Source of the DNA: Asterias rubens | Taxonomy: Eukaryota | Direction of reading: 5' to 3' | NCBI RefSeq assembly: GCF_902459465.1 | Contig: NC_047073.1 | Location: 10,292,001 to 10,356,000, forward strand | Length of the DNA: 64,000 bases | In this document: positions 1,816-64,000 of the stretch, piece after piece | Layout of the letters: each line of letters opens with the position of its first letter | How positions within the stretch are numbered: position 1 is the stretch's first letter | The notes under the pieces: model-generated | The model's database searches: none | The model's input: only the letters and a program-made list of their open reading frames with translations | Told to the model about the DNA's origin: nothing | Translations under genes and position numbers: made by a program

Positions 1816-1879
1816 AACACAAAGAGGCAGGCGCCTGACGCCTAAATTACTACTTGTTGAGTTTGGTTCAGTCACTGAC

Positions 1880-2210
1880 CACCTTTGGGTATTGTCAAAT
1901 ACCAGTATTCTCACTTGGTGCATCACAACATAATTATGCGAAAAATAATAAATCTGTGAAAATTTTGACTTGGTCATCGAAGTTGGCAAAAAATAATTAA
2001 AGCAAAAACACCCCTGTTTCACAAGTGTGTGTTCTTTCGGATCCGAAAAAGGCTTCATACCTGAAGTCTTTAATCTCCAAAAGTTCGTTATTTCAGAGGG
2101 AGCCGTTTCTCACAATATTTTATATTATCGACAGCACTCCATTGCTAGCTTGGTACCAAGTATAAGTTTTGACTGCTAACAATTTGAGTAATAACCATCA
2201 GTACAGTGTA
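1880..2210 (+). mobile_element. Degraded MITE A copy
   Basis: TTCTCACTTGGTG...TCAGAGGGAGCCGTTTCTCACAAT internal motifs. Confidence 0.6.
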
Positions 2211-3659: not shown

Positions 3660-3867
3660 GGGCTCAATTTCATAAAGCCTGTGTAAGCACCAAAAAAAAA
3701 AAAGCTAAACACAGAAAAGCATTGCTTAGCAAAAAACTGCAGAAACAGGTTACCCGTCAAAATACCACAAAATTGTGACTGTTAAACTAAAAGTGCATGC
3801 TTAGTGAAGAAATTTGTCCACTTGTCAAGCAGTATTTTCTATGGAACAGCTTTATGAAATTTGGCCC
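3660..3867. mobile_element. GGGCCC-type MITE relative
   Basis: GGGCTCAATTTCATAAAGC...GCTTTATGAAATTTGGCCC. Confidence 0.62.
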
Positions 3868-3890
3868 TATTGCTGTATGAGGTATGGTAT

Positions 3891-4036
3891 CTGCAGCCGA
3901 TTTCACGAAACGCTAGGAACTCGTACTAACTTAGGATTAATCTTAAGGTCTGCTTGCTACAGTGCAGGGTTGGGACTCGTCCTAAGTCCTAAGATTAATC
4001 TTAAGTTAGGAAGAGTTTGGTGAAATCGACGGCAGG
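3891..4036. mobile_element. Small palindromic MITE
   Basis: Imperfect TIR CTGCAGCCGATTTCACGAAAC / GTTTGGTGAAATCGACGGCAG with internal TTAGGATTAATCTTAAG symmetry. Confidence 0.6.
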
Positions 4037-5092
4037 CCTATTTAAGACAATACAAATACAGTAGAAGTCAATTAATTGGTCATAGACTAGTCAACAGACA
4101 TTACACTTTAAAGAGCGACAAAGTAAATTATGTTCAAGATGACAAAGCTGTCATTTTGCAAATAGCACTTCTTTTATTGGAAGTCGTAAAGAATAAAGAA
4201 AATGTTTAAAGGGGCACAGGGGCAGCAGAGGCAATGACATCCATGTAGGCCTGGTAATAGCCAATAAACTTTGAACCTTTCTAAAACTGTTTGGACAAGT
4301 CTTGAATAGTAAACAATTGAAAAAGTTCAAGTTCTACATTGTTCGTTACAAAAATGGATTTCCAGAAAGTGATTAAATGCTCAGTCAGATGGGCAGAGTT
4401 TTTTTAGTTTTATCAAACAAGTTAAACATTCTTAGGTAATACAAATTGATATTAAGATAAGAACTATAGTGGAATAATTGTGATTCCGTCTTACTTACTA
4501 GACACAATGAAACTATCATTTCAACATAAGCCTGTAACCAAACAATTGAAATCTTTGCAGATTTCAATTGGTGATGTTTTATTTTTTAGGCCCAATTTTA
4601 AAAGCTGCTACAGTGTTAAGTGCATAAGATTTGCTATTTCTGTAGTCTGAAAGACTCGTACTTAAGTCAGTACGCACACAACAAAACTTGCTCAAAAATA
4701 TCTTGCTTATATAGCAGAAACTGGCAACACTCCAAAGTATCTTTCAATCATGTTTTTGTCACAGGTACCCATCTACTTTCTTGCTTGCCTTGGAATATAT
4801 ATTGCTAAGCACCAATTCTTTTCGAAGATTTGAAATTAATTTGAATGAAAATGGTCATTTGTGAGCGCTAAATGTTGCTTAACCATAGTAGCACCTTATT
4901 TATGTAGGGAACCCAAGTGCGCCCTCATTGTTCATAATGTAGAAAATTAACTCTGGGGTTGCGACCTGTATATTCACTCTCTTTTTCTTTGGTAGCTTAC
5001 CAACTCATTTGAGGTTTTGCCCGAGACTTGATGACAGAACATTTAAAAAAATATTAAAAACGATTTAAAAAGATTTGACTAGGGCCTAGTTT

Positions 5093-5108
5093 ACATTTAT
5101 TTTTATTT
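5093..5108 (-). promoter_or_regulatory. Candidate polyadenylation signals of gene B
   Basis: Minus strand GAAATAAAAATAAATG contains two AATAAA hexamers about 115-130 nt after the stop at 5223. Confidence 0.4.
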
Positions 5109-5222
5109 CTCATGATGATATATGGAAATAAACGTTGCTTTGAAATAAGTTCGAATTGAAACGGTTGGATAAATAGAAAAGTCTGTTGTTTTAAAAGCAG
5201 ATCAACAAGACCAATCAAATGA

Positions 5223-5407
5223 CTAAGGCCTTGCTTCACAGCTAACTCCATCCTCCAGCAGGCGCCCTCCTTTTTCACAAAGGCAGTACTCTCCATCCCA
5301 GTCCAGAAGGCTGCCCGGAGGGCATGCACAGATATAGTCCGTCAGTCTTGAGGGGGAGGGAAGGCAGATATGGGAACAGCGATGATTCAAACATCGGTTA
5401 GGGACTT
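5223..5407 (-). CDS. Gene B exon 43: 8-Cys EGF reading through a GC (ex-GT) donor to stop (SCEARP*); probable terminal exon
   Basis: [63 protein letters not shown]. The donor position (5233-34) is GC where paralogous exons have GT. Confidence 0.85.
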
Positions 5408-38400: not shown

Positions 38401-41400
38401 TTCACAAGCCTGAGAAAACCTGTAAACAGGGTGCACGCTATGTAAAAGATGTTTTCTTGGCACTATACCAATACTAGTATACACGACCTAGAGCTTCATG
38501 TCCCATCCGGAGGAAAAACAATACTTGTTTAAGTGTTTTTCTGAAGGACAAGTGTTCAGAACGGGACTCAAACCCACATCAAAAGCTCACTGGTGCTCTG
38601 TACTAACTTCCCACGACACACCACAAACCTTTATCAAACTATCACCAATACCAGAGTACTATCACTACGTAACTGCAAAAGCAAAAAACATAGATACTGA
38701 TAATCGATATGCTAAATTAGCAGGCAGACTAATTTTTCCCCAATGTTCACATCCTCTCTTAGTGGACACTCTCCTGACGATGACTAGAGCAAGCTAGTAG
38801 AGACGTTGAGACCAATTCAAGAACTGACTCCGCGGTAGTACAGTTAATTACGATTCTATAAGCTAAAGTAGTCGTCCCAGCCTATTTCTATACCATCAAC
38901 AGTTCTTTTGAGAAGTCTCCCGAACACCCGAACAATCTACTCTGCGGTTGTAGAATGAAGCATGAAGAACAAACTCTACCTGGCAAAGTAGATACACACA
39001 TGGTGTTACCGCAAACCAAATATATATGGACTGATGCGCTTCTACTTTACTCACCATGGTCACAGTAATAGCCCTTGGGGACACTGATGCACTGTCTACT
39101 TCCACAACCTCCATTGTCATCACTACATGCCTCTGTAAAAAAAAAGGAGACCCAAAAAGTTACACCAGGACTGCGTTTTAAGCTGGTGAGCATTGCAAAC
39201 TTTGGCAGCTTTGCATTCAAATTTTGATTTCAAGAATAAAAAAGGAGACCCAAAAAGTTACATCAAGGCTGCGTTTTAAGATGGTGAGCATTGCAAACTT
39301 TGGCTGCTTTGCATTCAAATTTTGATTACAAGAATAAAAAAGGAGACCCCAAAAATTACATCAGGGGTGTGTTTCATGCAGGTGAGCATTGCAAACTTTG
39401 GGCATCAGTTGCATTTGCAAATAATGAATGTATGAATAATTTTTGTGTTTATATGCCAGTCCATCGAAGACTCTCGGCACTACCCTTTTTGTACTCCAGA
39501 GTGGAACGAAGCAAGTATATAAGAAGTGCCTTGGTTGAGGACAAAAGGATTCAAACCAACATTCTGTAAATAACAGAACTGCGATTCACTGTCGAAGACT
39601 GCTCAGCCTTGACCCTAAACACCAGTGGTTTTCCTTTTACTTTGCAGCTAAAAGGGTTGCATTTTGTGGAGTAAAAAATTTGACTCCACAAATTGGCTTG
39701 CAGTGTTATTTCATGACATATAAGGCAATTTCGAGGCATATTAGTGTGGATCATTATATTTTACTTTTTAAAGGCAGTGGACACTACTGGTAACTTCTCA
39801 AAATAATTATCATCATAAAACCTTTCTTGATTACAAGTAATGGGGAGAGGTTGATAGTAAAAAACATTGTGAGAAACAGCTCCCTCTGAAGTGACGTAGT
39901 TTTCGAGAAAGAAGTAATTTTCCCACGAACTTGATTTCGAGACCTCAAGTTTAGAATTTGAGGTCTCGAATTCAAGCATCAGAAAGCACACAACTTCGTG
40001 TGACAAGGGTGTTTTTTTCTTTCATTTCTATCTCGCAACTTCGACGACCGATTGAGCTCAAATTTTCACAGGTTTGTTATTTTATGCATATGTTGAGATA
40101 CACCAATTGTGAAGACCAATCTTTTACAATTACCAATAGTGTCCACTGTCTTTAAAACTACTTTACAATCATATGCATGTCATAACAAACACTTTTCAAA
40201 TACCAACTTGCCCACAGTCTGAAGCATTGTGCCCCTTTAACCACCAGGCCTCAATTTCAGGCTCGACTTAATGTTAGCACAGAATCAGCGCTTACGGAAG
40301 CAGGGAATTATGTGCTTACGGCAAGCATATTTCACGGGTTGGAGGCGAATTTTGGCTTCTGTGCGACTGTGTGGATACTCAACGGTACTAGGCTTTCTAT
40401 GCTTACAAGGCTGCGCAGAAATTTGGTCTCTTGCACGTCAAGTGGGGAATCGTGATCGTAAGCACAGAATTCAGCGGTGAGCAGCGGGCCCAGAACTTGA
40501 ATTTTATGCTCTCAACCACTCGGCCATATTACACCCTTTAGAATAGACACTGCAAACCTTTGAAATACCGCTTCTATCTTTGACCGAAAACAAAATCGAG
40601 GTCAATTTGTCTGTAGATACTTTACTTATCCACTAGTTTTGTTGTCATTTCCTGTCACCTAAAACTAACATTTTAATAATTTGGTTTTATCTGTAGTTTT
40701 CACTTACGAGCAGTGAACTCCGTTTCGTCTACATCTTGTCTCACCTAACATACATTTTACATTTATCGTTAAATCTCTACAACTTGTCTACATTTTTGTG
40801 TACTTCACACTACTTTTATCATCATTCCTGTTCACCTTTAAAATAACATTTTAGTCAAATTCTTATCATCTGCAGTCTTGACTTACGAGCAGTGCACTTG
40901 GTTTCGTCTTCACCGCCTTGACAGTCAGAAGTGCCATCACAAAGCTGAGAGGTCAAGATGCAAGTGGATTGATAAGGACACTGGAAACGGTTTTGCGCTG
41001 TACAGACACCAGAGCAGTCTTTCTCATCTGAGTTTCCAGGGCAGTCTTGAAAGCCGTTACAGCGAACTGAAGACGGCTGGCAGGATCCATCATCACAGGT
41101 AAACTCATCATCAGAACATGTTTGGTCTGTTATCCAAGGTGAAATAAAAATGTTACATAGGGTGCGTTCGATTAGCTTCCCTGGGTCGACCCCGATCTGC
41201 CCCAGTATGTTCAAATAGCTTTGACATCATTCCAGGGGTTAATTCGGGTCAGCCCCAAGTGCCCTGCTTGTGGAGTGGGTCACTTTGGGCTGGCCTGAGG
41301 TGCATGACATCACCATAAGAGGGTGATTGATCATTCGCTTAGCTCTTGTCAGGGGCCTGAATGAGCAACGCAGGGTCCACATAGGGAAGCTAATCGAACG

Positions 41401-44400
41401 CACCCAAAGTAATACTTGGTTTTTATAGATCACACACATCCTTAGTAGCTAGATCAAGACGCTTTACAACATTATTATCCCTTTTCATTGGGCATACTTG
41501 GACCATATTCTCAGACTGAGTTAATTCAAAACGATTTATCTTTGGCTTTATAATAGATCAAAGCAGATGCGACCCCATTACTCTAACATCCGGTTTATGC
41601 TTGTCTACTCATCGGTCACCCTGTGTTTACGTAAAGATCAGTGTGTTTTTTTAATTCTGTCCACACAACAGTGTTAACATATAAACCCGAAGTGGTCTAA
41701 AGATAAACCCCCTAGCTCAACGGTCTAACTTTTATTGGTTAAATCCGATTCAGTCTAGTACTGTCTACCGTTGTTTGGACACACCAAGTTGAACTAGATT
41801 GGGATGCACAAAGAGCAAAACCGACTTAAGTACCGTCACATCAAGAGTGCGTGTGAAATTGCTCATAAATTGTCAATAAATTGCACAATCAAGTTGTGTG
41901 AATGATTTTGCAACTGACATTGTGTGCCATAGAACCTGATACTACTGGTGTGTCTATACTTACTTTTCAATAGGAGACTTTTGGGACGCTTGGTGGCAGC
42001 AGACTTACCAGGTAAATTCCATTGTTCTTGGTAATGTGCGCACGCTCAGAGCTACGTGAACAATGGAAATTGACCTGGTAGGTCTGCTGCCAGCGTTCCA
42101 CAGTCTCCCATTAATTATAAAACCAGATAAAACTGACCTCCTGGGCAGGAAGCTTCATCCGAACCATCTTCACAGTCCGTGTCACCGTCACATTGCCACG
42201 TTTTGGTTATACATTGATCACTGCATTCAAATTCAGTCTCTGCATTACAGTTGAGTTCAACCCCTACATCTATGAACATCACATCAAATTTATTCAGTTT
42301 CTTATTGTATATTTGTCCGTACAAGTGTACCTGCTGAGTTTGTGACTAGTGTCATTTGAGATAGATAGAAAAACTGAACTGCAACTATGATACAACATTT
42401 AAAAAAAAAGTTAAAAGGACATCATTAAGAGAACAACAATAGTATATACAATAATTATTATAAAATACGCAAGCAAAAAGGGGAATAAAAACATACAACA
42501 ACCACACACCTTTGACAAGACACACACCACACAAGTGTCAACATGCATGGTGCTATGTAAGTTTTGGTAGTGTGATTTTTATTCTTTTTTATTAGTATCA
42601 CATCTAATATGTGTATCTGTGAAAATTGCTTTGCACAAGTTGGGTGAATGATTTTGCAATCGATAATGTGGGACATAGAACCTGATGCTACCGTTGTGTC
42701 ATTTTAGTAGGTCCCCAACAGATATGCAGCTAATCTTGATTGTGAAATATGTAAATGCACACCTTGCTTGCATTCTTACACTACTGGTTGTCAACATGAG
42801 GGAATATCACGCCTTTTTGTTTTGGGGCTGATGTGATTGCATGACTTGTAGGTGTTTGTGAAACCAGTGATATTTACTAGTCTTGATTGATCAATTCATT
42901 TTTGTATGTTGGTGTGTAATGCACTGGTAGATTTCTCCAACTGAGGGTGTTCGTTCTTAATTGTTGTAAAGCCTGATACTACTTGTGTGTCTGCACTTGC
43001 TTTCCAATTAAAGGCAGTGGACACTGTTGGTAATTACTCAAAATAATTATCAGCATAAAACCTTACTTGGTTACGAGTCATGGGGAGAGGTTGATAGTAT
43101 AAAACATTGTGGGAAACGGCTCCCTCTGAAGTGTCGTAGTTTTCAAGAAAGAAGTAATTTTCCGCGAATTGGATTTCGAGACCTCAGAATTAGACTTGAG
43201 GTCGGAAAAACAAGCATCTGAAAGCACACAACTTCGTGTGACAGGGGTGTTTTTTCTTTCATAGGTATATCTAGCAACTTTGACGACCAATTGAGCTCAA
43301 ATTTTCACAGGTATGTTATTTTATGCATATGTTGAGATACACAAAGTGAGAATGTTGGTCTTTGACAATTACCGACAGTGTCCAGTGTCTTAAAACTATA
43401 AAACCAGATAGAACGTACCTGAACAGGTAGCTTCATCCGAACCATCATTGCAGTCTTCATCACCATCACAATGCCAGCGTTTAGGTATACATTGATTGTC
43501 ACTGCATTTGAATTCAGTCTCTGAACAGCTGAGCTCCAATTCTGCAATTGTAAATCCCACATCAAAATATTATGTGCAAGTTTTCAAAAATAGCTGTGCT
43601 ATTCTCTCACTCAGTATATAGCTGCCTTTCTTGAGCTATGACCCTGCTCCTCAGTTGGTTTTCTCCTCAACACTCACTGAGATGGAAAGCTCTTCAACCT
43701 GTCCCGCCTGTCAGTGAGCCAAACAGTTTGTGTGCTAGCTCCCACTCTTTTATCTCTCTCTATCTAGCTGCCTTTCTTGAGCTCTGACCCTGATGATCCT
43801 CAGTTGGTGTTTTCCTCAACACTCTCTCAGACAGAAAGCTGTTCAACCTGTCTGGCCTGTCAGGGAGCCAAACAGTTTGTGCGCTGGCTCCCACTCTGTT
43901 ATCTCTCTTTCTATCTAGCTGCCCTTCTTGAGCTGTGATCCTGATCCTCAGTTGGTGTTCTACTCCACAACACTCTCTCAGATTCAAAGCTGTTCAACCT
44001 GTCTCACCTGTCAGGGAGCCAAACAGTCTGTGCGCTGGCTCCCACTCTTTTATCTCTCTCTATATCTAGCTGCCTTTCTTGAGCTGTGATCCTGATCCTC
44101 AGTTGGTGTTCTACTCCTCAACACTCTCTCAGATTCAAAGCTCTTCAACCTGTCTCGCCTGTCAGGGAGCCAAACAGTTTGTGCGCTGGCTCCCACTCTT
44201 TTATCTCTCTCTATATCTAGCTGCCTTTCTTGAGCTCTGACCCTGATCCTCAGTTGGTGTTCTACTCCTCAACACTCTCTCAGATTCAAAGCTTCCCTGG
44301 GTCGACCCCGATCTGCCCCAGTATGTTCAAATAGCTTTGACATCATTCCAGGGGCTAATTCGGGTCAGCCCCAAGTGCCCTGCTTGTGGAGTGGGTCACT

Positions 44401-47400
44401 TTGGGCTGGCCTGAGGTGCATGACATCACCATGAGAGGGTGATTGATCATTCGCTTAGCTCTTGTCAGGGGCTCAAATGAGCAACGCAGGGTCCACATAG
44501 GGAAGCTAATCGAACGCACCCAAAGTAATACTTGGTTTTTATAGATCACACACATCCTTAGTAGCTAGATCAAGACGCTTTACAACATTATTATCCCTTT
44601 TCATTGGGCATACTTGGACCATATTCTCAGACTGAGTTAATTCAAAACGATTTATCTTTGGCTTTATAATAGATCAAAGCAGATGCGACCCCATTACTCT
44701 AACATCCGGTTTATGCTTGTCTACTCATTGGTCACCCTGTGTTTACGTAAAGATCAGTGTTTTTTTTAAATTCTGTCCACACAACAGTGTTAACATATAA
44801 ACCCGAAGTGGTCTAAAGATAAACCCCCTAGCTCGACGGTCTAACTTTTATGGGTTAAATCCGGTTCAGTCTAGTACTGTCTACCGTTGTTCGGACACAC
44901 CAAGTTGAACTAGATTGGGATGCACAAAGAGCAAAACCGACTTAAGTACCGTCACATCAAGAGTGCGTGTGAAATTGCTCATAAATTGTCAATAAATTGC
45001 ACAATCAAGTTGTGTGAATGATTTTGCAACTGACATTGTGTGCCATAGAATCTGATACTACTGGTTTGTCTATACTTACTTTTTAATAGGAGACTTTTTG
45101 GACGCTTGGTGGCAGCAGACTTACCAGGTAAATTCCATTGTTCTTGGTAATGTGCGCATGCTCAGAGCTACGTGAACAATGGAAATTGACCTGGTAGGTC
45201 TGCTGCCAGCGTTCCACAGTCTCCCATTAATTATAAAACCAGATAAAACTGACCTCCTGGGCAGGAAGCTTCATCCGAACCATCTTCACAGTCCGTGTCA
45301 CCGTCACATTGCCACGTTTTGGTTATACATTGATCACTGCATTCAAATTCAGTCTCTGCATTACAGTTGAGTTCAACCCCTACATCTATGAACATCACAT
45401 CAAATTTATTCAGTTTCTTATTGTATATTTGTCCGTACAAGTGTACCTGCTGAGTTTGTGACTAGTGTCATTTGAGATAGATAGAAAAACTGAACTGCAA
45501 CTATGATACAACATTTAAAAAAAAAGTTAAAAGGACATCATTAAGAGAACAACAATAGTATATACAATAATTATTATAAAATACGCAAGCAAAAAGGGGA
45601 ATAAAAACATACAACAACCACACACCTTTGACAAGACACACACCACACAAGTGTCAACATGCATGGTGCTATGTAAGTTTTGGTAGTGTGATTTTTATTC
45701 TTTTTTATTAGTATCACATCTAATATGTGTATCTGTGAAAATTGCTTTGCACAAGTTGGGTGAATGATTTTGCAATCGATAATGTGGGACATAGAACCTG
45801 ATGCTACCGTTGTGTCATTTTAGTAGGTCCCCAACAGATATGCAGCTAATCTTGATTGTGAAATATGTAAATGCACACCTTGCTTGCATTCTTACACTAC
45901 TGGTTGTCAAAATGAGGGAATATCACGCCTTTTTGTTTTGGGGCTGATGTGATTGCATGACTTGTAGGTGTTTGTGAAACCAGTGATATTTACTAGTCTT
46001 GATTGATCAATTCATTTTTGTATGTTGGTGTGTAATGCACTGGTAGATTTCTCCAACTGAGGGTGTTCGTTCTTAATTGTTGTAAAGCCTGATACTACTT
46101 GTGTGTCTGCACTTGCTTTCCAATTAAAGGCAGTGGACACTGTTGGTAATTACTCAAAATAATTATCAGCATAAAACCTTACTTGGTTACGAGTCATGGG
46201 GAGAGGTTGATAGTATAAAACATTGTGGGAAACGGCTCCCTCTGAAGTGACGTAGTTTTCGAGAAAGAAGTAATTTTCCACGAATTGGATTTCGAGACCT
46301 CAGAATTAGATTTGAGGTCGGAAAAACAAGCATCTGAAAGCACACAACTTCGTGTGACAGGGGTGTTTTTTCTTTCATAGGTATATCTAGCAACTTTGAC
46401 GACCAATTGAGCTCAAATTTTCACAGGTATGTTATTTTATGCATATGTTGAGATACACAAAGTGAGAATGTTGGTCTTTGACAATTACCGACAGTGTCCA
46501 GTGTCTTAAAACTATAAAACCAGATAGAACATACCTGAACAGGTAGCTTCATCCGAACCATCATTGCAGTCTTCATCACCATCACAATGCCAGTGTTTAG
46601 GTATACAGTGATTGTCACTGCATTTGAATTCAGTCTCTGAACAGCTGAGCTCCAATTCTGCAATTGCAAATCCCACATCAAAATATTATGTGCAAGTTTT
46701 CAAAAATCGCTGTGCTATTCTCTCACTCAGTATATAGCTGCCTTTCTTGAGCTATGACCCTGCTCCTCAGTTGGTTTTCTCCTCAACACTCACTGAGATG
46801 GAAAGCTCTTCAACCTGTCCCGCCTGTCAGTGAGCCAAACAGTTTGTGTGCTAGCTCCCACTCTTTTATCTCTCTCTATCTAGCTGCCTTTCTTGAGCTC
46901 TAACCCTGATGATCCTCAGTTGGTGTTTTCCTCAACACTCTCTCAGACAGAAAGCTGTTCAACCTGTCTGGCCTGTCAGGGAGCCAAACAGTTTGTGCGC
47001 TGGCTCCCACTCTGTTATCTCTCTTTCTATCTAGCTGCCCTTCTTGAGCTGTGATCCTGATCCTCAGTTGGTGTTCTACTCCACAACACTCTCTCAGATT
47101 CAAAGCTGTTCAACCTGTCTCACCTGTCAGGGAGCGAAACAGTTTGTGCGCTGGCTCCCACTCTTTTATCTCTCTCTATATCTAGCTGCCTTTCTTGAGC
47201 TCTGACCCTGATCCTCAGTTGGTGTTCTACTCCTCAACACTCTCTCAGATTCAAAGCTCTTCAACCTGTCTCGCCTGTCAGGGAGCCAAACAGTTTGTGC
47301 GCTGGCTCCCACTCTTTTATCTCTCTTTCTATCTAGCTGCCCTTCTTGAGCTCTGACCCTGATCCTCAGTTGGTGTTCTACTCCTCAACACTCTCTCAGA

Positions 47401-49138
47401 TTCAAAGCTCTTCAACCTGTCTCGCCTGTCAGGGAGCCAAACAGTTTGTGCGCTGGCTCCCACTCTTTTATCTCTCTCTATCTAGCTGCCTTTCTTGAGC
47501 TGTGACCCTGATGATCCTCAGTTGGTGTTTTCCTCAACACTCTCTCAGACAGAAAGCTCTTCAACCTGTCTGGCCTGTCAGGGAGCCAAACAGTATTTTT
47601 TGCAGGCTCCTGCTCTACTCTCTTTCTATCTAGCTGCCTTTCTTGAGCTGTGACCCTGATCCTCAGTTGGTGTTTTCTTCAATACTCTCTCAGACAGAAA
47701 GCTCTTCAACCTGTCTGGCCTGTCAGGGAGCCAAACAGTATTTTGTGCAGGCTCCTGCTCTACTCTCTTTCTATATAGCTGCTTTTCTTGAGCTCTGACC
47801 CTGATCCTCAGTTAGGGTTTTCCTCAACACTCTCAGACAGAAAGCTCTTCAACCGAGCTGTCTTTCCTGTCTGGGAGCCAAACAGGATCATGTGCCTTCT
47901 CCTGCTCTATTCTTATTGTATGGGAAAATAGCTGAGGATAACTCGATCATACCCTGCACGTAGCAGGTGCAGTTTCGCCACCACTCACCAACATAGACCG
48001 ATTCCCCACATGTGAAAATGCTGAAAGTCATGCTCTAACTAGAATGACCCACATATGCATCTGTTTTTTGTTTCAGTAATGTTGTGTAGAATTTTTGATA
48101 CTTCAAATCTTGGATTGTTAATTTTGTTTGTTCCAAAGGAGAGAAATGGCATACATACTAATACTTTTGTATTTTACATTTTACATCAAATTGCACTTTT
48201 AATACTTCAGGAATTCTTTTTAATGAGGTACATGTTTACAAACAGATTGAATGTTGTTTAGATTTTTTACTCCTAATGTTATAATTGTGTTTCTAATTTT
48301 TTAGTCTTTCCATTACTCATGCAATGTTCAGCAGCCTAGAGCATGTCAACATGATTAAAGGCAGTGGACACTACTGGTAATTGTGCATAAAATAACAAAC
48401 CTGTGAAAATTTGAGCTCAATCGGTCATCGAAGTTGCGAGATAATAATGAAAGAAAAATAACCCTTGTCACACAAAGTTGTGTGCATTTAGATGGTTGAT
48501 TTCGAGACCTCAAGTTCTAAATCTGAGGTCTCGAAATCAAATTCGTGGAAAATTACTTCTTTATCGAAAACTATGGCACTTCAGAGGGAGCTGTTTCTCA
48601 CAATGTTTTATACCATCAACCTCTCCCCATTAATCGTCACCAAGAAAAGTTATGCCAATAATTATTTTGAGTAATTACCAATAGTGTCCACTGCCTTTAA
48701 GGTGCTATATAAGTGTTGGTATCATTATTACTATTACTTGTTTTTTCAATTAAATATAAAATTGAAGTGTCGTGGCCGAGCGGTTAAGAGCACCGAATTC
48801 AAACTCTGGTGTTTCTGATCAGCAGAGTGTGGGTTTGAATCCCCAGTCGTGACACTTGTGTCCTTAAGCAAGACACTTAACCATTGTTTCGTCCTTCGGA
48901 TAGGACGTAAAGCCATTGGTCTCTTGTGTTGTGTAATGCATGTAAAAGAACCAAGTGCACCTATCGAAAAAAGAAGGGGTCCGCCCCGGTGTTCCTGGCT
49001 GTGGCTGCTATATGCGCAGTAGCACTCAGATTTCATCACTGCAATAACCTATCTTTCTGAAAGTTTGTATATATATCCAGCGCCTGAGTACCTTGTTTGG
49101 TAGATCTGTGCGCTATATAAGACTTCGATATTATTACG

Positions 49139-49206
<68 letters not shown>

Positions 49207-52200
49207 GAAAACTTACCTACACATGAAGCTTCATCTGAACCATCCTTACAATCCTCTTCTCCGTCACAACGCCATTGTTTGGGTATACATCCGTCGCTGC
49301 ATTCAAACTCAGTCTCTGCATCACAGTTGAGCTCAAGCCCTACATATTATTTATCACATGAAATTGTAACTGTGAAAATTTAAAGGCACTAGACACTATT
49401 GGTAATTGCTCAAAATAATTGTTAGCATACAGACTTACTTTGTAACAAGCAATGGAGAGCTGTCAAAAAACAAGAGCTTGAAACATTGTGAGAAATGGCT
49501 CTGTATGCAATAACGTATTAATTTTCCGTTAAAATACTTGAATTTGATTTCGAAGACTCAGAACTATAGATTTTGAGGTCCAGAAATCAAGCATCTGAAA
49601 GCACAGGGTGTTTTTTCTTCCATTATTACCTTGCAACTTCGATGACCACAATTTCGATGACCAATTGAGTTCAAATTTTTACAGGTTTTGTTGTTTTATG
49701 CATAATGTTGAGATACACCAAGTGAGAAGACTGGTCTTTAAAAAATACAAAAAGTGTCCAGTGTCTTTAAATGCTTCACGCACAATTAATTCATATTGAA
49801 TCTGTGGCAAAATTATTTCCAAAACATATATTTTTTGTTGTTGATTATTTTACTAACTACATGTAAGCAACACAGAGAATGGGGATATTAACACAACAAA
49901 ACAGAGGTTTTATAAGCTGAAAAAAACCCCGGCATGTCAGTAATTCAAAACTGTTTTCATATGTTCTCTTTCTTAACAATAATAATCAACTACAGCATTA
50001 TAAAGGCGTACTTTACTGAGAAACATTGAAAGCACCGGTCAGGATCAGAAGTTAAAGATTAAGATAAAGTATTGTCAAGATGTTGGAAAGCAAGCATGAA
50101 CAAGTGTGGTTTAAGTTTCTGCTGGAAGAAAGTGATGTTGTGTATTTATAGGGCCCAATGTCATGGAGTTGCTTAAGCAGAAAATATATTGCTTAATGTT
50201 TTGCTAAGCAGAAATGAGCAGAATACCACTCACAAATTGTACATGTTAGTTTTTTCCTAGGCCTAAGCAGCTCTATAAAATTGGGCAATGCTTTCATGTG
50301 GACATTCCAGATCACAGTTACATGTCTAAATTGCAGGGATGCACTTTGACACATGCTCAATGGTTGCACGCTCTCACATGCTACACAGTAAAATCCACTA
50401 TGCAAAAAATACACAAAATATACCCCAGTGGCCACTATTTTTTATATCAAACATTGGACATGGTAGTTTGGCTCACTGGTATTTCCATGAAGTGTTAACA
50501 ATTTCAACATGTGGCCTCCTAACCTTCACAGCTACTTTCGTCTGAAGAATCTGTACAATCTTGTTGACCATCACATTGCCAAGATGCCGGGAGGCACTGT
50601 CCGTCTGATCCGCACCTAAACTCAGTATCTTTATCACAAGCTTTGCGGTACAAAGGATAAATGGGATTTGAGGCAATGCATGCATGGTGATACATAAATG
50701 TATATTTGGATTACCACAAACCCTACAAGTCGGACTTCAGACAAAAAGTGATTAGAAAATTGTTCCTAATGGTCATCTAATGGTCATCAGTAGTGGTCAT
50801 TTTATGAATATTTACAAAACAAATTATCTCCCACATTCTCAGTCGAATTGCAGTCTTTAAGCCATGGTTTAGTGCCGTATTGGCTAAGGGAAGTATTTAG
50901 GCCAATGGTCAGCAGAAAATCAAAACAAGTTGCTTTTTTACACTTTATAGACAGTCATAAAATTAGGCCAATGATCATCCTAGTGGTCAGCTGTGATTTT
51001 CACAAAAAAATTAAAGAATGCAAGTATTTTCAAAATCGAGTCCTATATTTCGGGTGAAACAGTTTTTGGACATTGGTCACCTTGCATGGTCACTCGGTCA
51101 GCAGTGATCATTTTATGTAAAAAACAATGCCATACATTTTTATACTTTTTACTTAATTTTATAGGGCTGACATTCATGATTTGTGAAACTCTTCACTAAA
51201 AAAATACAAAAGTGTCATCACACAAGTCCCTTTTGTTCACTAAAATGTGTTCCTTCCGACCAACCACTGCATTGTGTACACTAAATATTACTGCAATGGG
51301 TGTTTCAAAGTAATTTTATTTATTTTTTGCGAAGTCTAATTGATTCGCTGCCTCAAATAAAAACCAAGAAAATTCAATAACTGCACTCACATTAAAATTG
51401 TATGCCAAGCCAATGCTTGAGGAAAACGTAGCATGTACTGCATTTTAAAGTTAAAAACCATGTCATCTTTTTTTTGTTTTACTGCAATTACATGGGGGTG
51501 GGATGGGGGAGGGAATGAGGCATGCTAATCAAACTAACAATTGATGATTTCTTAAAGCACAGCTTATATTTTCCGGCCTGATGTTGTAAAAAAAAAAATC
51601 ATACAGATGACAGTAAATAAGTTCCCAAACTATAACAGCAGTTTATCTTGTAAACGTTTAGGTCTTCTTAAAAATAAGTTTTGCAAGTTTTGCAAAAGAA
51701 AATCTTACACTTCCCCAAGTATAGTAAAACTATGATTGATGTGACTACTTGAAAGCACAGCATGGACATAAATTACTCAAAATAATTGTTTGCATAAAAA
51801 CTTAGGACAATGGAAAGTTGTTGATAGAATAAAACATTGTGAGAATCGGCTCCCTCTGAAGTGACGTAGTTTTGAGAAAGAAGTAATTTGAATTTGATTT
51901 TGAGACCTCAGAATTAGAATTTGAGGTCCCCGAAATCAAGCATCTGAAGTCACACAACTTGTGTGACCTCCATGGTGTGACAAGGGTGTTTTTTCCCCCA
52001 TTATTATCTTGCAACATCGATGACCAAAATGAGCTCAAATTTACTGGTTTGTTATTTTCTGCATATGTTCAGATGCACCAAGTGAGAAGACTGGTCTTTG
52101 ACAGTTACCAATAGTGTACAAAATGTAATGCATAGCCACAGTCAGAAAATGTACTTACCATTTGCTTTGCAAAGAAAGGAAAACAACAGAAGTACCATAA

Positions 52201-52255
52201 AATGTAGAGCCATCTTCACAGAGGTGGCTCTATCCACTCTATCAAACCACCACAT
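5223..52255 (-). CDS. Gene B span: multi-exon LDL-receptor-family (LRP-like) protein, about 2,600 aa, apparently lacking a TM/cytoplasmic tail
   Basis: 43 exons with AG/GT boundaries and matching phases throughout except at exon 10 (see findings). Domains are signal peptide, 16 LDLa, EGF repeats and 5 YWTD propellers. Confidence 0.85.
5889..6059. mobile_element. CAGGCCTG-ended small element
   Basis: CAGGCCTG at both ends, AACTAC direct repeat on both flanks; absent from the homologous intron near 12115. Confidence 0.55.
6112..6250 (-). CDS. Gene B exon 42 (module 4): propeller last blade
   Basis: [46 protein letters not shown]; 139 nt. Confidence 0.87.
6672..6930 (-). CDS. Gene B exon 41 (module 4): propeller
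   Basis: [20 protein letters not shown]...[10 protein letters not shown]...HPFSIAVHQ; 259 nt. Confidence 0.93.
7256..7492 (-). CDS. Gene B exon 40 (module 4): propeller
   Basis: [41 protein letters not shown]...[10 protein letters not shown]; 237 nt, phase 2-2. Confidence 0.92.
7559..7746. mobile_element. ATAGACC-ended MITE
   Basis: TIR ATAGACC(A/G)AT(T/C)CATTA.G.TCCGCCC; truncated copy at 14904-15040, inverted relative at 34146-34340. Confidence 0.72.
8330..8404. repeat. 39-bp direct duplication (also at about 15622-15697)
   Basis: TTTAACCCTGTCTGGGTGATCATTCAAAAGTGACG twice. Confidence 0.8.
8472..8626 (-). CDS. Gene B exon 39 (module 4): propeller start
   Basis: Appears identical to exon 32; 155 nt. 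Confidence 0.88.
9251..9408 (-). CDS. Gene B exon 38 (module 4): EGF
   Basis: Appears identical to exon 31; 158 nt. Confidence 0.9.
9521..9717 (+). mobile_element. tRNA-derived SINE-like element
   Basis: A-box TAGTCTAGTTGG, B-box GGTTCGAATCC, non-tRNA tail, TTGACTC direct repeats either side; absent from homologous introns near 23850 and 31100. Confidence 0.75.
10066..10303 (-). CDS. Gene B exon 37 (module 4): 2 LDLa
   Basis: [18 protein letters not shown]...EYEDEMGC; 238 nt. Confidence 0.92.
10887..11059 (-). CDS. Gene B exon 36 (module 3): 8-Cys EGF
   Basis: Appears identical to exon 29; 173 nt. Confidence 0.9.
11244..11871 (-). mobile_element. 5'-truncated RTE-clade non-LTR retrotransposon fragment (RT C-terminus) with (GAT)n tail
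   Basis: Translates [12 protein letters not shown]...[13 protein letters not shown]...[17 protein letters not shown]...RRLQFAVHC...RGRTK with one in-frame stop; AGTCT direct repeats at 11239-43 and 11872-76. Confidence 0.88.
12212..12350 (-). CDS. Gene B exon 35 (module 3): propeller last blade
   Basis: [24 protein letters not shown]...; 139 nt. Confidence 0.87.
12856..13720. repeat. 19-bp minisatellite (AAAGTCAAGTGCCATGCTC) split by a MITE
   Basis: Tandem units either side of 13041-13420; duplicated at 20152-21016. Confidence 0.85.
13041..13420 (+). mobile_element. Kolobok/T2-type MITE family A (about 385 bp)
   Basis: TTAA flanks; AG(G/A)CA(G/C)TGGACACTATTGGTAATT-type TIRs; many copies in window. 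Confidence 0.85.
13785..14043 (-). CDS. Gene B exon 34 (module 3): propeller
   Basis: [20 protein letters not shown]...; 259 nt. Confidence 0.92.
14273..14515 (-). CDS. Gene B exon 33 (module 3): propeller
   Basis: Near-identical to exon 26; 243 nt, phase 2-2. Confidence 0.92.
15765..15919 (-). CDS. Gene B exon 32 (module 3): propeller start
   Basis: [52 protein letters not shown]; 155 nt. Confidence 0.88.
16544..16701 (-). CDS. Gene B exon 31 (module 3): EGF
   Basis: [53 protein letters not shown]; 158 nt. Confidence 0.9.
16820..17017 (+). mobile_element. tRNA-derived SINE-like element (duplicated copy)
   Basis: Same as 9521-9717. Confidence 0.75.
17366..17603 (-). CDS. Gene B exon 30 (module 3): 2 LDLa
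   Basis: [18 protein letters not shown]...EYEDEMGC; 238 nt. Confidence 0.92.
18186..18358 (-). CDS. Gene B exon 29 (module 2): 8-Cys EGF
   Basis: [57 protein letters not shown]; 173 nt. Confidence 0.9.
18538..19165 (-). mobile_element. Second copy of the RTE fragment (inside the 7.3-kb duplication)
   Basis: Same 628 bp and AGTCT TSD. Confidence 0.88.
19506..19644 (-). CDS. Gene B exon 28 (module 2): propeller last blade
   Basis: [46 protein letters not shown]; 139 nt. Confidence 0.87.
20337..20716 (+). mobile_element. Kolobok-type MITE A (duplicated copy)
   Basis: As 13041-13420. Confidence 0.85.
21081..21339 (-). CDS. Gene B exon 27 (module 2): propeller
   Basis: [20 protein letters not shown]...[10 protein letters not shown]...HPFGIAVYQ; 259 nt. 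Confidence 0.92.
21582..21824 (-). CDS. Gene B exon 26 (module 2): propeller
   Basis: [25 protein letters not shown]...[10 protein letters not shown]; 243 nt. Confidence 0.92.
22730..22887 (-). CDS. Gene B exon 25 (module 2): propeller start
   Basis: [53 protein letters not shown]; 158 nt, phase 0-2. Confidence 0.88.
23344..23501 (-). CDS. Gene B exon 24 (module 2): EGF
   Basis: [53 protein letters not shown]; 158 nt. Confidence 0.9.
24045..24282 (-). CDS. Gene B exon 23 (module 2): 2 LDLa
   Basis: [18 protein letters not shown]...EYEDEMGC; 238 nt, phase 0-1. Confidence 0.92.
24310..24540. repeat. About 21-bp minisatellite (GGATTCCGGTTGAATTAACCG-like)
   Basis: About 10 degenerate tandem units next to the exon 23 acceptor. 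Confidence 0.8.
24757..24929 (-). CDS. Gene B exon 22 (module 1): 8-Cys EGF
   Basis: [57 protein letters not shown]; 173 nt, phase 1-0. Confidence 0.9.
25370..25505 (-). CDS. Gene B exon 21 (module 1): propeller last blade
   Basis: [45 protein letters not shown]; 136 nt, phase 0-1. Confidence 0.85.
25764..26145. mobile_element. TTAA-flanked MITE family C
   Basis: TTAAAGGG...CCCTTTAA ends, long internal inverted symmetry; related copy at about 34690-35056. Confidence 0.75.
26254..26515 (-). CDS. Gene B exon 20 (module 1): propeller
   Basis: [20 protein letters not shown]...[22 protein letters not shown]...HPFSIAVHQ; 262 nt, phase 2-0. Confidence 0.93.
26688..26930 (-). CDS. Gene B exon 19 (module 1): propeller
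   Basis: [16 protein letters not shown]...[15 protein letters not shown]; 243 nt, phase 2-2. Confidence 0.92.
26966..27351 (-). mobile_element. Kolobok-type MITE A
   Basis: TTAA-AGGCAGTGGACACT...AGTGTCCAGGGTCT-TTAA. Confidence 0.85.
27670..28030 (-). mobile_element. Kolobok-type MITE A-related subfamily, one end truncated
   Basis: TTAAAGGGAAGGTACACGTTTGGTAATT start; internal homology to family A. Confidence 0.7.
28561..28715 (-). CDS. Gene B exon 18 (module 1): propeller start
   Basis: [52 protein letters not shown]; 155 nt, phase 0-2. Confidence 0.88.
28794..29023. mobile_element. Inverted pair of Penelope-like element terminal remnants
   Basis: Long inverted repeat containing CTGAAGA...CGAAAC motifs typical of PLE pseudo-LTRs; related fragments at 37580-37690 and 38770-38850. 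Confidence 0.55.
29407..29779 (+). mobile_element. TTAA-flanked MITE related to family A (AGCCATTG termini)
   Basis: TTAAAGCCATTG...CAATGGCTTTAA. Confidence 0.75.
30241..30398 (-). CDS. Gene B exon 17 (module 1): EGF
   Basis: [53 protein letters not shown]; 158 nt, phase 1-0. Confidence 0.9.
30732..31079. mobile_element. Foldback MITE family B
   Basis: Homologous to 1444-1815; perfect 23-bp central inverted repeat; TTAA flanks. Confidence 0.8.
31186..31425. mobile_element. GGGTG(A/C)GTTCGATTAGCTTCCC-ended MITE
   Basis: TIRs of about 22 bp, ATT on both flanks; relatives at 41160-41405 and truncated 44290-44521. Confidence 0.75.
31822..32059 (-). CDS. Gene B exon 16 (module 1): 2 LDLa
   Basis: [18 protein letters not shown]...[24 protein letters not shown]...EYEDEIGC; 238 nt, phase 0-1. 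Confidence 0.93.
32694..32881 (-). CDS. Gene B exon 15: EGF-like (8 Cys)
   Basis: [62 protein letters not shown]; 188 nt, phase 1-0. Confidence 0.88.
33880..34080 (+). mobile_element. tRNA-derived SINE-like element, same family
   Basis: Homologous head and tail to 9521-9717 at an independent site. Confidence 0.72.
34354..34533 (-). CDS. Gene B exon 14: EGF-like (8 Cys)
   Basis: [58 protein letters not shown]; 180 nt, phase 1-1. Confidence 0.9.
34690..35056. mobile_element. MITE family C copy
   Basis: Homologous to 25764-26145. Confidence 0.7.
35268..35409 (-). CDS. Gene B exon 13: last blade of propeller 1
   Basis: [47 protein letters not shown]; 142 nt, phase 0-1. Confidence 0.9.
35771..36023 (-). 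CDS. Gene B exon 12: YWTD propeller 1
   Basis: [20 protein letters not shown]...[21 protein letters not shown]...HPFDIIVHQ; 253 nt, phase 2-0. Confidence 0.93.
36240..36496 (-). mobile_element. Degraded copy of the 48766 SINE family
   Basis: Reverse complement matches CTGGTGTTTCTGATCA...GACAC.TGTGTCCTTAA...GTCCTTCGGAT; interrupted by a MITE at 36497. Confidence 0.6.
36497..36746. mobile_element. GGGCCCAATTTCATAGAGCTGCT-ended MITE (Harbinger-like, tentative)
   Basis: TIRs at both ends; related copies at 3660-3867, 50151-50286, 57249-57447, 61031-61256. Confidence 0.7.
36864..37082 (-). CDS. Gene B exon 11: YWTD propeller 1
   Basis: [53 protein letters not shown]; 219 nt, phase 2-2. Confidence 0.93.
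37843..38070 (-). CDS. Gene B exon 10: EGF C-terminal half and start of YWTD propeller 1 (probable 1-bp deletion near 38057)
   Basis: [32 protein letters not shown]...[25 protein letters not shown]. The best acceptor (38071-72) is out of phase with exon 9 by one base. An alternative in-phase AG lies at 38096-97. Confidence 0.8.
39055..39132 (-). CDS. Gene B exon 9: N-terminal half of an EGF-like domain
   Basis: [26 protein letters not shown]; TTTTTTTTACAG acceptor, GTGAGT donor, 78 nt, phase 1-1. Confidence 0.85.
39140..39410. repeat. About 98-bp tandem repeat, about 2.7 units
   Basis: AAAAAGGAGACCCAAAAA.TTACA.CAGG...GGTGAGCATTGCAAACTTTGG repeated. Confidence 0.8.
39768..40155 (-). mobile_element. 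Kolobok-type MITE A nested in a foldback MITE remnant
   Basis: TTAA both sides; flanks join to the sequence seen uninterrupted at 30955-31065. Confidence 0.85.
40887..41126 (-). CDS. Gene B exon 8: two LDLa repeats
   Basis: [80 protein letters not shown]; 240 nt, phase 1-1. Confidence 0.93.
41160..41405. mobile_element. Same GGGTG-ended MITE family
   Basis: Perfect 22-bp TIR GGGTGCGTTCGATTAGCTTCCC. Confidence 0.78.
42138..42263 (-). CDS. Gene B exon 7: LDLa (duplicate of exon 5)
   Basis: Appears identical to exon 5, offset by 3116 bp. Confidence 0.88.
43008..43393 (-). mobile_element. Kolobok-type MITE A
   Basis: TIRs and TTAA flanks. Confidence 0.85.
43419..43541 (-). CDS. Gene B exon 6: LDLa (duplicate of exon 4)
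   Basis: Exon 4 copy offset by 3116 bp with two substitutions; AG/GT intact. Confidence 0.88.
43610..44293. repeat. About 150-bp CT-rich tandem satellite (about 4.5 units)
   Basis: Unit CTAGCTGCCTTTCTTGAGCT.TGACCCTGATCCTCAGTTGG...CAGGGAGCCAAACAGTTTGTG. Confidence 0.92.
45254..45379 (-). CDS. Gene B exon 5: LDLa
   Basis: [41 protein letters not shown]; 126 nt, phase 1-1. Confidence 0.9.
46124..46509 (-). mobile_element. Kolobok-type MITE A (duplicated copy)
   Basis: 43008-43393 plus 3116. Confidence 0.85.
46535..46657 (-). CDS. Gene B exon 4: LDLa
   Basis: [40 protein letters not shown]; 123 nt, phase 1-1. Confidence 0.92.
46726..47910. repeat. About 150-bp tandem satellite (about 8 units)
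   Basis: Same unit, diverging toward the right end. Confidence 0.92.
48355..48700 (+). mobile_element. Kolobok-type MITE A (internal deletion)
   Basis: TTAAAGGCAGTGGACACT...AGTGTCCACTGCCTTTAA. Confidence 0.85.
48766..49206 (+). mobile_element. tRNA-derived SINE with GCGCTATATAAG 3' end and (TAT)n tail
   Basis: A-box GTGGCCGAGCGGTTAA, B-box GGTTTGAATCC, tail ending in about 25 TAT repeats. Confidence 0.75.
49130..49206. repeat. (TAT)n microsatellite (SINE tail)
   Basis: About 25 TAT units. Confidence 0.95.
49217..49339 (-). CDS. Gene B exon 3: LDLa
   Basis: [40 protein letters not shown]; 123 nt, phase 1-1, GTAAGT donor. Confidence 0.92.
49380..49770 (-). mobile_element. Kolobok-type MITE A
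   Basis: TIRs and TTAA flanks, diverged. Confidence 0.8.
50524..50640 (-). CDS. Gene B exon 2: LDLa
   Basis: [38 protein letters not shown]; 117 nt, phase 1-1. Confidence 0.92.
51750..52118 (-). mobile_element. Kolobok-type MITE A, degraded ends
   Basis: Internal homology to family A. Confidence 0.7.
52159..52213 (-). CDS. Gene B exon 1: signal peptide
   Basis: [19 protein letters not shown] followed by GTAAGT donor, phase 1. An in-frame upstream ATG at 52255 adds [14 protein letters not shown]. Confidence 0.8.
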
Positions 52256-63798: not shown

Positions 63799-64000
63799 CT
63801 GTAGGGGAGACAGATATTGGTCATTGGGTTGAGTTTGGTAGGTTATAAGACAATGTAGGGGGAAACTTAAAGAAAACTTTGTATCACAAGTTGCTTTAAT
63901 AGTTTGGATAGAAAATGGCTGCTAATTGATCTGAGCAAACTGAAGAGTGCTTTCTATTCTTTTTACAAACTTTATAAGCTCCTTATTGTGTTTTTTCTAC

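Follow-up and report, generated by a model that had tools for sequence, protein, structure and literature searches.

Relatives of the LDL receptor are textbook endocytic and signalling receptors; where soluble versions occur, they are as a rule side products of receptor shedding or of splicing. The locus considered here, a gene of about 47 kb on the minus strand (52255-5223) of a stretch of starfish (Asterias rubens) DNA of 64,000 bases with zero N (hereafter the window), raises the question of whether a giant member of this superfamily can be encoded as an ectodomain alone and, if so, how it came to end as it does. We consider it likely that the gene is real and intact and that it encodes an ectodomain-only LDLR-superfamily protein of a starfish family, in a derived, tail-less form that presumably acts outside the cell as a calcium-dependent, multivalent binder.

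The gene model is firm at the level of individual exons. An earlier sequence-only reading had described a signal-peptide exon, eight LDLa modules, an EGF-propeller-EGF-EGF block and four seven-exon cassettes. When one propeller exon (26254-26517, minus strand) was used as query, it retrieved a 2,138-residue protein both ends of which matched that model exactly. The same protein cluster holds isoforms X1 (2,594 residues), X2 (2,555) and X3 (2,550) as well as three A. amurensis orthologues of 2,510-2,554 residues, and RefSeq lists four A. rubens isoforms, X1-X4. The longest, XP_033636919.1 (P0274; RefSeq 'LRP2-like isoform X1', an automatic model that the reading had missed), is 100% identical to the window, residue for residue, in 43 minus-strand exon blocks from 52255 to 5226, and all 42 introns have a single GT-AG solution that reproduces it. 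The coding sequence comprises 7,785 nucleotides, that is, 2,594 codons and a TAG stop (5225-5223). This protein and Pfam agree exon by exon with the anatomy first described: a signal peptide, eight LDLa modules (exon 41126-40887 carrying two of them), a degenerate EGF, a propeller, two EGF modules and then four cassettes, each a single seven-exon unit of two LDLa modules, an EGF, four propeller exons and a further EGF. The intron phases inside a cassette are 0/1/0/2/2/0/1, and a cassette both starts and ends in phase 0. One LDLa exon is skipped in each of isoforms X2 and X3, and X4 joins 23344 to 15919, which drops one cassette length. Exon 1 is predicted to encode the signal peptide, as judged by its hydrophobic core and small residues at -3 and -1; the N-terminal extension that precedes it has a homologous counterpart (MLWIDSRAAAKLSLYLALLVAFHKAN) in a tandem paralogue, XP_033636923.1 (RefSeq 'LRP1-like', 1,980 residues), which lies upstream of the focal gene on the same strand.

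Run on the full-length protein, Pfam gives 16 LDLa stretches, 14 of class B (YWTD) and 5 strong EGF matches; the 16 Ldl_recept_a stretches together reach E 2.6e-121, and five full-length propeller envelopes of about 260 residues each can be traced. In all, the protein has 16 LDLa modules, about 11 EGF modules and 5 YWTD propellers. The hallmarks of the LDL-receptor superfamily, six-cysteine LDLa modules with an acidic calcium cage and YWTD propellers flanked by EGF modules, are thus present: every one of the 16 LDLa modules keeps its six cysteines and an acidic cluster, of the D-x-S-D-E type or, in the second module of each cassette, E-Y-E-D-E. Cassette 1, of 455 residues, is colinear with residues 257-694 of LDLR and 1313-1738 of LRP2 in solved structures, and the propeller unit is also colinear with the LRP4 and LRP6 structures. 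The list of modules stood, with Pfam domains where the reading had placed them, except for the first 'EGF' (39132-39055). This exon, before propeller 1, encodes a half module with only four cysteines. The paralogue keeps the complete module, and in the focal gene the second half survives directly upstream of acceptor 38011 (38020-38070, minus strand), in a frame that cannot be reached from the phase-1 donor. In the second propeller exon of cassette 4 (about 7380-7400, minus strand) the sequence reads NLYCVNT, compared with the conserved NLYWVNT of the other cassettes; a blade of the YWTD type thus gains an extra cysteine, and the cysteine count of the mature protein becomes odd (173).

Two components of the canonical receptors are missing. 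Kyte-Doolittle scans of all isoforms, orthologues and the 4.4 kb downstream found no single transmembrane segment after the last EGF, and no NPxY cytoplasmic tail was found, there being no tail at all in P0274, P0153, P0001 and P0156; neither a transmembrane segment nor an NPxY motif occurs in the four A. rubens isoforms or the three A. amurensis orthologues. The frame had been read as stopping right after the last EGF, and all four RefSeq isoforms and the three A. amurensis models share precisely that stop. Its local context is informative. In the three internal cassettes and in the paralogue, the EGF exon ends in TGT GAG/GTAATG, a phase-0 donor. In the last cassette the corresponding sequence is TGT GAA GCA AGG CCT TAG, in which GC has replaced the donor GT and a stop comes after three further codons (A-R-P). 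A. amurensis has the identical GC state (GAA GCA AGC CCT TAG), and its protein ends in ...CEASP. A tandem polyadenylation signal, AATAAAAATAAA, at 5107-5096, 116 nucleotides past the stop, is fully conserved in A. amurensis.

The DNA beyond the stop points to the origin of this C-terminus. Over roughly the first 30 nucleotides past the stop (to about 5195), the sequence is homologous to the intron found after the EGF exon in the internal cassettes, and DNA homology between the focal gene and the paralogue ends within 4 nucleotides of the last exon's end. Because homology with the internal cassettes extends about 30 nucleotides past the exon, into their intron, what now forms the 3' end of this gene was once an internal intron. 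On this comparison, the focal stop arose by read-through of a lost donor into that intron, with A-R-P as the read-through residues. With GT changed to GC after the EGF exon of the last cassette, translation continues for three codons to the stop; the new 3' end lies about 30 nucleotides inside the former intron, and the tandem AATAAA comes 116 nucleotides past the stop.

The interval between the stop and the next gene, which encodes a GPCR (G-protein-coupled receptor), had been described as devoid of a transmembrane exon or NPxY tail over 4.4 kb, and scans of open reading frames (ORFs) and of hydrophobicity in all frames uphold this. Among the 18 ORFs of at least 40 residues between 5225 and 847, none is of transmembrane grade and none contains NPxY; the highest Kyte-Doolittle 19-residue score is 1.95, compared with 3.3-3.7 for genuine LRP4 transmembrane segments under the same script, and several of these ORFs are broken by stops in A. 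amurensis. A scan with a 20-residue window in every frame, with no length cut-off, gave one borderline T-rich stretch at about 3753-3680, whose maximum of 2.36 stays below the LRP4 range and which sits in an ORF of less than 40 residues with no NPxY nearby. Conservation was discarded as a guide to hidden 3' exons, since the two Asterias species are 90-95% identical everywhere, including introns.

These results bear directly on the simplest alternative, that the gene encodes an ordinary type-I membrane LRP whose transmembrane and cytoplasmic exons were missed, either beyond the GPCR gene or reached through the GC site at 5234. The core members of the LDLR family are, after all, membrane receptors, and GAA/GCAAGG resembles a GC donor and could in principle act as a weak one, a point that weighs against our reading. 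We nevertheless regard a hidden membrane anchor as very unlikely: the 4.4 kb downstream contains neither an NPxY motif nor an ORF of transmembrane grade, it is followed on the same strand by a GPCR gene that looks intronless, the stop is identical in four RefSeq isoforms and three A. amurensis models, the polyadenylation signal 116 nucleotides past it is conserved in both species, and the four closest relatives likewise have no transmembrane segment and share a conserved alternative C-terminus.

That alternative C-terminus is seen in the upstream paralogue. Its last EGF exon keeps GAG/GTAATG and splices in phase 0 to a tail exon of 61 codons, in which the end of the family tail is encoded. The family tail comprises about 62 residues with three cysteines and the motif PLPLxVxGLT...FDxxC...C.P+G...G.Y.C; it is conserved in A. 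amurensis, Acanthaster and Patiria, with the stop within two codons of the same place in three genera, and PLPLxVxGLT occurs in the C-termini of P0154, P0155, P0288 and P0283. No Pfam family matched the tail, a local hidden Markov model (HMM) of it matched only known family members among 287 fetched proteins, which confines the tail to four starfish genes so far, and an index search with the paralogue tail alone, in an index that demands exact five-residue words, returned the paralogue only. The odd number of cysteines could mean that the tail pairs covalently with another chain or partner. By the heuristic, Kyte-Doolittle-based scan on which signal-peptide and transmembrane assignments in the family rest, the paralogue and the Acanthaster and Patiria homologues have no transmembrane segment, and signal-peptide-like N-termini are present in Patiria X1 and in the Asterias and Acanthaster proteins. 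The sole NPxY-type match among these relatives is an NPKY in the Patiria X2 model (residue 419), in the extracellular part. That starfish as far apart as Asterias, Patiria and Acanthaster share such a conserved end is the strongest evidence to hand that the anchor is truly missing and was not just overlooked by the gene models. The focal gene lacks the tail both in its protein and in the downstream DNA: neither tblastn (E up to 5) nor blastn at a word size of 7 bases found a remnant of the tail exon, and no DNA homology of 847-5095 to the last intron or tail exon of the paralogue was detected. The focal gene is a tail-less, derived copy, and its stop is the outcome of a loss of the tail exon that the sequence-only reading had not recognized.

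The paralogue also accounts for a cassette at 58-64 kb that was considered as a source of 5' exons for the focal gene. This was rejected, as its last donor is in phase 0 and the acceptor of the first LDLa exon (50640) is in phase 1, and as the cassette matches exactly a separate RefSeq protein with its own stop and AATAAA.

The family to which both genes belong, as defined here, consists of A. rubens XP_033636919-23, A. amurensis XP_071799210-14, Acanthaster XP_022087296 and Patiria XP_038048391-93. Cassette identity to the focal protein is 94% in A. amurensis, 70% in the paralogue and 53-54% in Acanthaster and Patiria, and at most 33% in everything else that was fetched; over the whole protein the values are 53% for the paralogue, 45% for Acanthaster XP_022087296.1 and Patiria XP_038048391-93, and at most 35% for all others. 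In a tree of 55 propellers (a quick LG+G4 search, in which the program flagged long branches), all 24 family propellers form one clade with an SH-aLRT value of 100, apart from those of LRP4, LRP1, LRP2 and the vitellogenin receptor (VgR). The focal gene shares with its relatives a cassette at least 50% identical, propellers inside the family clade, a signal peptide and, by the heuristic scan, the lack of a transmembrane segment. The earlier proposal of a lineage-specific family is therefore well supported by the single clade and by cassette identities of 53-94% inside compared with at most 33% outside, and the database search and propeller phylogeny that it had called for revealed no orthology to a described membrane LRP. 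Among the proteins fetched, the family was seen only in starfish.

The automatic names given to these proteins suggest otherwise, and the closest candidates deserve comparison. LRP4 (MEGF7) resembles the family in having a block of eight LDLa modules followed by several propeller-EGF units, in matching the four propellers of the family's inferred older layout (Acanthaster and Patiria) and, by name, in that a Patiria member is automatically called 'LRP4-like'; unlike the focal protein, it spans the membrane and carries a cytoplasmic tail, and its propellers are not separated by LDLa pairs. In layouts derived from local HMMs (A, LDLa; P, propeller; e, EGF), LRP4 reads 8A-e-e-[P-e]x4 followed by a transmembrane segment, the focal protein 8A-P-e-e-[AA-e-P-e]x4, the paralogue 15A-[e-P-e]x2-[AA-e-P-e]-tail, Acanthaster 13A-[e-P-e]x2-[AA-e-P-e]x2-tail and Patiria 8A-[e-P-e]x2-[AA-e-P-e]x2-tail. 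Propellers 1-4 of LRP4 each group the frog, acorn worm and starfish LRP4 sequences elsewhere in the propeller tree, which gave no one-to-one orthology of family propellers with LRP4 P1-P4. Asterias holds a separate LRP4 orthologue with a transmembrane segment (P0225), and A. rubens also holds a separate 'LRP2-like' protein of 4,550 residues, XP_033629411.1, listed as a cell-membrane protein; the focal gene is therefore neither LRP4 nor LRP2, despite the automatic names. LRP2 (megalin) and LRP1 provide the best-scoring solved structures and many of the database matches and likewise alternate LDLa clusters with EGF-propeller-EGF, but they are only 26-31% identical to the focal protein. LRP1 and LRP2 have 8 propellers, 31-36 LDLa modules, a transmembrane segment and NPxY motifs. 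The cassette corresponds end to end to the last LDLa modules, EGF, propeller and EGF of LDLR (257-694); LDLR and VLDLR, however, have one such unit with a transmembrane segment and NPxY, whereas the focal gene has four in tandem, with one EGF and not two before the propeller.

Anchor-free proteins built from similar modules are known elsewhere. Nidogen is a secreted matrix protein with a YWTD propeller and EGF modules and no membrane anchor. It is like the focal protein in this respect and gives a weak structure match (1npe), but it has one propeller, no LDLa and other, different domains; no specific relationship exists. Soluble LRP1 (sLRP1) and soluble ApoER2 and VLDLR are anchor-free ectodomains that arise by shedding or splicing and act as extracellular competitors or carriers; they come from genes for membrane receptors, in contrast to the focal gene, which encodes no anchor in any listed isoform. 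The sea-urchin proteins SFE1, SFE9 and proteoliaisin are secreted, LDLa-rich components of the fertilization envelope that are not known to contain YWTD propellers, and no sea-urchin protein was found among the close database matches of the focal protein. Similar in outline are abalone 'LRP4-like' proteins (Haliotis asinina XP_067677199.1/P0034 and H. rubra XP_046556918.1/P0290), known as gene models only, which have a predicted signal peptide, eight LDLa modules and five propeller-EGF units and in both species stop directly behind the final EGF, lacking a transmembrane segment; they differ in being 27% identical and in having no LDLa pairs between propellers, and are probably an independent case. 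Bivalve 'LRP4-like' proteins (P0184, P0185, P0191 and P0193) have five propellers, one or two LDLa modules after propeller 1 and a transmembrane segment. An argument from the rarity of transmembrane absence was dropped, because 135 of the 253 long LRP-like models fetched have no strong hydrophobic segment and many of these may be partial.

Cassette duplication has shaped the focal gene. The propellers of the family fall into three types; of the cassette type, Patiria and Acanthaster each have two copies, the Asterias paralogue has one and the focal gene four. These four form a clade of their own, sister to the single cassette propeller of the paralogue, so the expansion took place in the lineage of Asterias once the gene had duplicated. 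A. amurensis has a syntenic locus (order paralogue, gene, GPCR), where the gene has four cassettes, among them a diverged cassette 3 with no A. rubens counterpart, and seven LDLa modules in the leading block that numbers eight in A. rubens. In A. rubens, 7606-14904 and 14898-22211 are 98.6% identical over 7.3 kb, one cassette period, which begins at the second propeller exon of one cassette, reaches the first propeller exon of the following one and starts and ends in phase 2. Cassette 2 lies within copy 'a' of this duplication from 22211 downward, its exon 22887-22730 being unique, and cassette 3 is built wholly from the two 98.6% copies and has no one-to-one A. amurensis orthologue. Both near-identical A. 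rubens units are chimeras, with a propeller part close to A. amurensis cassette 2 and the remainder close to cassette 3/4. A second tandem duplication, of two LDLa exons each, makes 41174-44293 and 44290-47409 98.9% identical over 3.1 kb and takes in coding exons 4-5 and 6-7 of the gene. Since the cassette is phase 0/0 and the 7.3-kb period phase 2/2, either unit can be gained or lost in frame. Unequal crossing-over in such a phase-0 repeat adds or removes whole cassettes in frame, as has occurred inside the genus Asterias, and the contrast between the two Asterias species is consistent with the gain of one period and the loss of another by this route. The suggestion that the gene grows by cassette duplication is thus substantiated, both by the propeller clade and by the different cassette content of two Asterias species.

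The count of four cassettes and eight leading LDLa modules maps as first described; what the description had missed is that one cassette and two LDLa exons are near-identical tandem copies. This leaves room for a different explanation, namely that the 7.3-kb and 3.1-kb copies are two haplotypes placed side by side in the assembly and that the true gene has three cassettes and six LDLa modules, which would bear on the size of the protein and not on its nature. A divergence of 1.1-1.4% lies within the usual allelic range in echinoderms, A. amurensis has neither duplication in this form, the unit seen in A. rubens is chimeric, and the shorter RefSeq isoforms X3 and X4 skip duplicated exons. On the other hand, there is no N at the junctions, the reading frame is kept through both duplications, the copies differ in minisatellite number (4.5 versus 7.8 units), the independently assembled A. 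amurensis gene also has four cassettes, and a collapsed gene would not equal isoform X4. We therefore treat such an artefact as a possibility that deserves attention, though we lean towards genuine tandem duplication.

Whether the gene is maintained can be judged from its rate of evolution. Between A. rubens and A. amurensis the synonymous divergence (dS) is 0.085, near the 5-10% divergence of introns, and the ratio of nonsynonymous to synonymous divergence (dN/dS, omega) of the focal gene is 0.36 (bootstrap 0.30-0.46) over 2,096 orthologous codons. The paralogue has an omega of 0.20 (333 codons) and a between-species amino-acid identity of 96.0%, versus 91.7% for the focal protein. The focal gene, whose 2,594-codon ORF is intact in both Asterias species, is under purifying selection and is less constrained than its paralogue.

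Several observations weigh against our reading of a real, selected gene. Faster evolution than the paralogue, together with the loss of the tail and the degenerate first EGF, could mean relaxed constraint. The RefSeq and A. amurensis models are automatic predictions, and the A. amurensis gene range runs from ATG to stop only and so carries no information on untranslated regions (UTRs). When the last 107 residues were used to look for short spliced fragments, only a genomic ORF of the window was returned; short proteins from ENA in the same clusters read into introns and therefore derive from genomic DNA, not cDNA. In the accessible part of the A. rubens coelomocyte and coelomic-epithelium proteome (PMC13409769), XP_033636919-XP_033636923 are not among the listed proteins, the list jumping at the accessions concerned from XP_033636909 to XP_033636996. 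Taken at their strongest, such points describe a 3'-truncated tandem duplicate that is becoming a pseudogene, with little or no transcription and no function of its own; this would also accommodate the lost tail exon, the half EGF whose missing part lies out of frame beside it, and the higher omega and lower between-species identity. It is hard to reconcile, however, with a 7,785-nucleotide ORF kept over 43 exons with all splice sites intact in two species, with a bootstrap upper bound for omega clearly below 1, with intact cysteine frameworks in all 16 LDLa modules and with the four isoforms listed by RefSeq (automatic models), and we judge decay of this kind unlikely.

If the focal gene is instead intact, as we favour, the absence of a membrane anchor and of a cytoplasmic tail means that its product should leave the cell as a soluble or matrix-bound glycoprotein, and secretion is what its sequence predicts. 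Intact LDLa modules and the known roles of such modules in LDLR, LRPs and nidogen suggest calcium-dependent ligand binding: the acidic pockets of the LDLa modules together with the faces of the propellers would provide multivalent, calcium-dependent contacts, and the protein might serve as a trap, carrier, or component of the matrix or egg coat rather than as an endocytic receptor. More tentatively, and with appreciable doubt about the picture as a whole, starfish may possess a secreted multi-propeller family of their own, not derived one-to-one from LRP1/2/4/5/6, whose members act as extracellular traps or in the matrix or egg coat, and of which the Asterias copy is tail-less, varies in cassettes and evolves fast in the manner of recognition proteins of immunity and reproduction.

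Table 1. Positions of the focal gene, its paralogue and other features in the window
Feature	Positions	Strand	Details
Coding exon 1	52159..52255	-	Start codon 52255; 14-residue N-terminal extension, then predicted signal peptide; donor AATG/GTAAGT, phase 1
LDLa 1-8, seven exons	40887..50640	-	Pfam Ldl_recept_a per ORF, E 1e-10 to 1e-16; introns all phase 1
LDLa exons	50640-50524, 49339-49217, 46657-46535, 45385-45254, 43541-43419, 42269-42138, 41126-40887	-	Exact protein mapping
First EGF-propeller-EGF-EGF block, seven exons	32694..39132	-	Pfam Ldl_recept_b, FXa_inhibition/EGF and protein mapping
First block exons	half EGF 39132-39055; propeller 1 38011-37843, 37082-36864, 36023-35771, 35409-35268; EGF 34533-34354; EGF 32881-32694	-	
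Cassette 1, seven exons	24757..32059	-	Pfam and protein mapping
Cassette 1 exons	two LDLa 32059-31822; EGF 30398-30241; propeller 28715-28561, 26930-26688, 26515-26254, 25505-25370; EGF 24929-24757	-	
Cassette 2, seven exons	24282-24045, 23501-23344, 22887-22730, 21824-21582, 21339-21081, 19644-19506, 18358-18186	-	Pfam and mapping
Cassette 3, seven exons	17603-17366, 16701-16544, 15919-15765, 14515-14273, 14043-13785, 12350-12212, 11059-10887	-	Protein mapping
Cassette 4 and stop, seven exons	10303-10066, 9408-9251, 8626-8472, 7492-7256, 6930-6672, 6250-6112, 5407-5223	-	Pfam and mapping
Putative short 3' UTR	5096..5222	-	AATAAAAATAAA signal
Intergenic interval to GPCR	847..5095	-	No transmembrane/NPxY exon candidate
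Paralogue 3' end, last seven coding exons	57527..63799	-	Exact mapping to XP_033636923.1
Paralogue last cassette without LDLa exon	63799-63641, 62599-62441, 61608-61366, 60860-60606, 59455-59318, 58610-58437	-	
Paralogue tail exon	57709-57527; stop 57526-57524; AATAAA at 57458	-	Own last exon, 61 codons
Copies of ~390-bp repeat (part 1)	13041-13420, 20337-20716, 26966-27352, 39768-40155, 43008-43394, 46124-46510		
Copies of ~390-bp repeat (part 2)	48384-48700, 52755-53140, 55202-55574, 59626-60020, 62663-63057, others		

The window contains further features (Table 1). The neighbouring GPCR gene is of the rhodopsin type (Pfam 7tm_1, E 2.8e-25), looks intronless and occupies 1-810 on the minus strand, starting with MANSDVL at 810 and running off the window; its syntenic counterpart in A. 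amurensis encodes 330 residues. An interspersed repeat of about 390 bp is present in more than 15 copies of 70-93% identity, in both orientations, in introns and intergenic DNA, and occurs at the A. amurensis locus as well. Minisatellites with a 151-bp unit lie at 43615-44293 (4.5 copies) and 46731-47885 (7.8 copies), inside the copies of the 3.1-kb duplication; further arrays have a 98-bp unit at 39140-39401 and a 63-bp unit at 24369-24543, and a long AAT/ATT-type microsatellite in the intron after LDLa exon 2 (49052-49216) translates as runs of N or I. On the plus strand, ARAGORN reports tRNA-Ser(GGA)-like sequences at 9527-9599 and 16826-16898, where an intron separates the LDLa exon from the EGF exon in cassettes 3 and 4, and a third, degenerate tRNA-Ser-like copy lies near 33900-34077; the tRNA-Ser(GGA)-like sequences may be genuine tRNA genes, or else repeats derived from tRNAs may begin with them. 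A 137-residue ORF with no Pfam match (11329-11739 and 18623-19033, minus strand), located in cassettes 2 and 3 in the intron that precedes the last EGF exon, resembles, by eye, the C-terminal part of ORF2 of a non-LTR (long terminal repeat) retrotransposon. The first intron of the A. amurensis orthologue, of about 8 kb compared with about 1.5 kb in A. rubens, contains a gene call for 195 residues on the opposite strand (L001 13284-14675, minus strand) with no Pfam match.

The sequence itself is already known as an automatic RefSeq model. A literature search with 11 accession numbers and UniProt identifiers found no citing paper, and a catalogue of sea-star footprint proteins (PMC9382459) does not mention LDL or YWTD. 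Within the literature searched, what appears to be undescribed is an anchor-free family with its own conserved tail, the read-through end of one member and the turnover of cassettes within a genus. The locus offers a clean case of a new C-terminus gained by reading into a former intron after loss of a donor, and another of in-frame change in domain number through a phase-symmetric, multi-exon repeat. The RefSeq names 'LRP2-like', 'LRP1-like' and 'LRP4-like' mislead proteomic and expression studies of starfish, which class such proteins as membrane receptors. If our reading is true, selection has kept an ectodomain-only family across distant starfish orders (Asterias versus Patiria and Acanthaster), and the LDLa-propeller toolkit would have been reused in the extracellular space, with a varying number of ligand-binding cassettes as part of that reuse.

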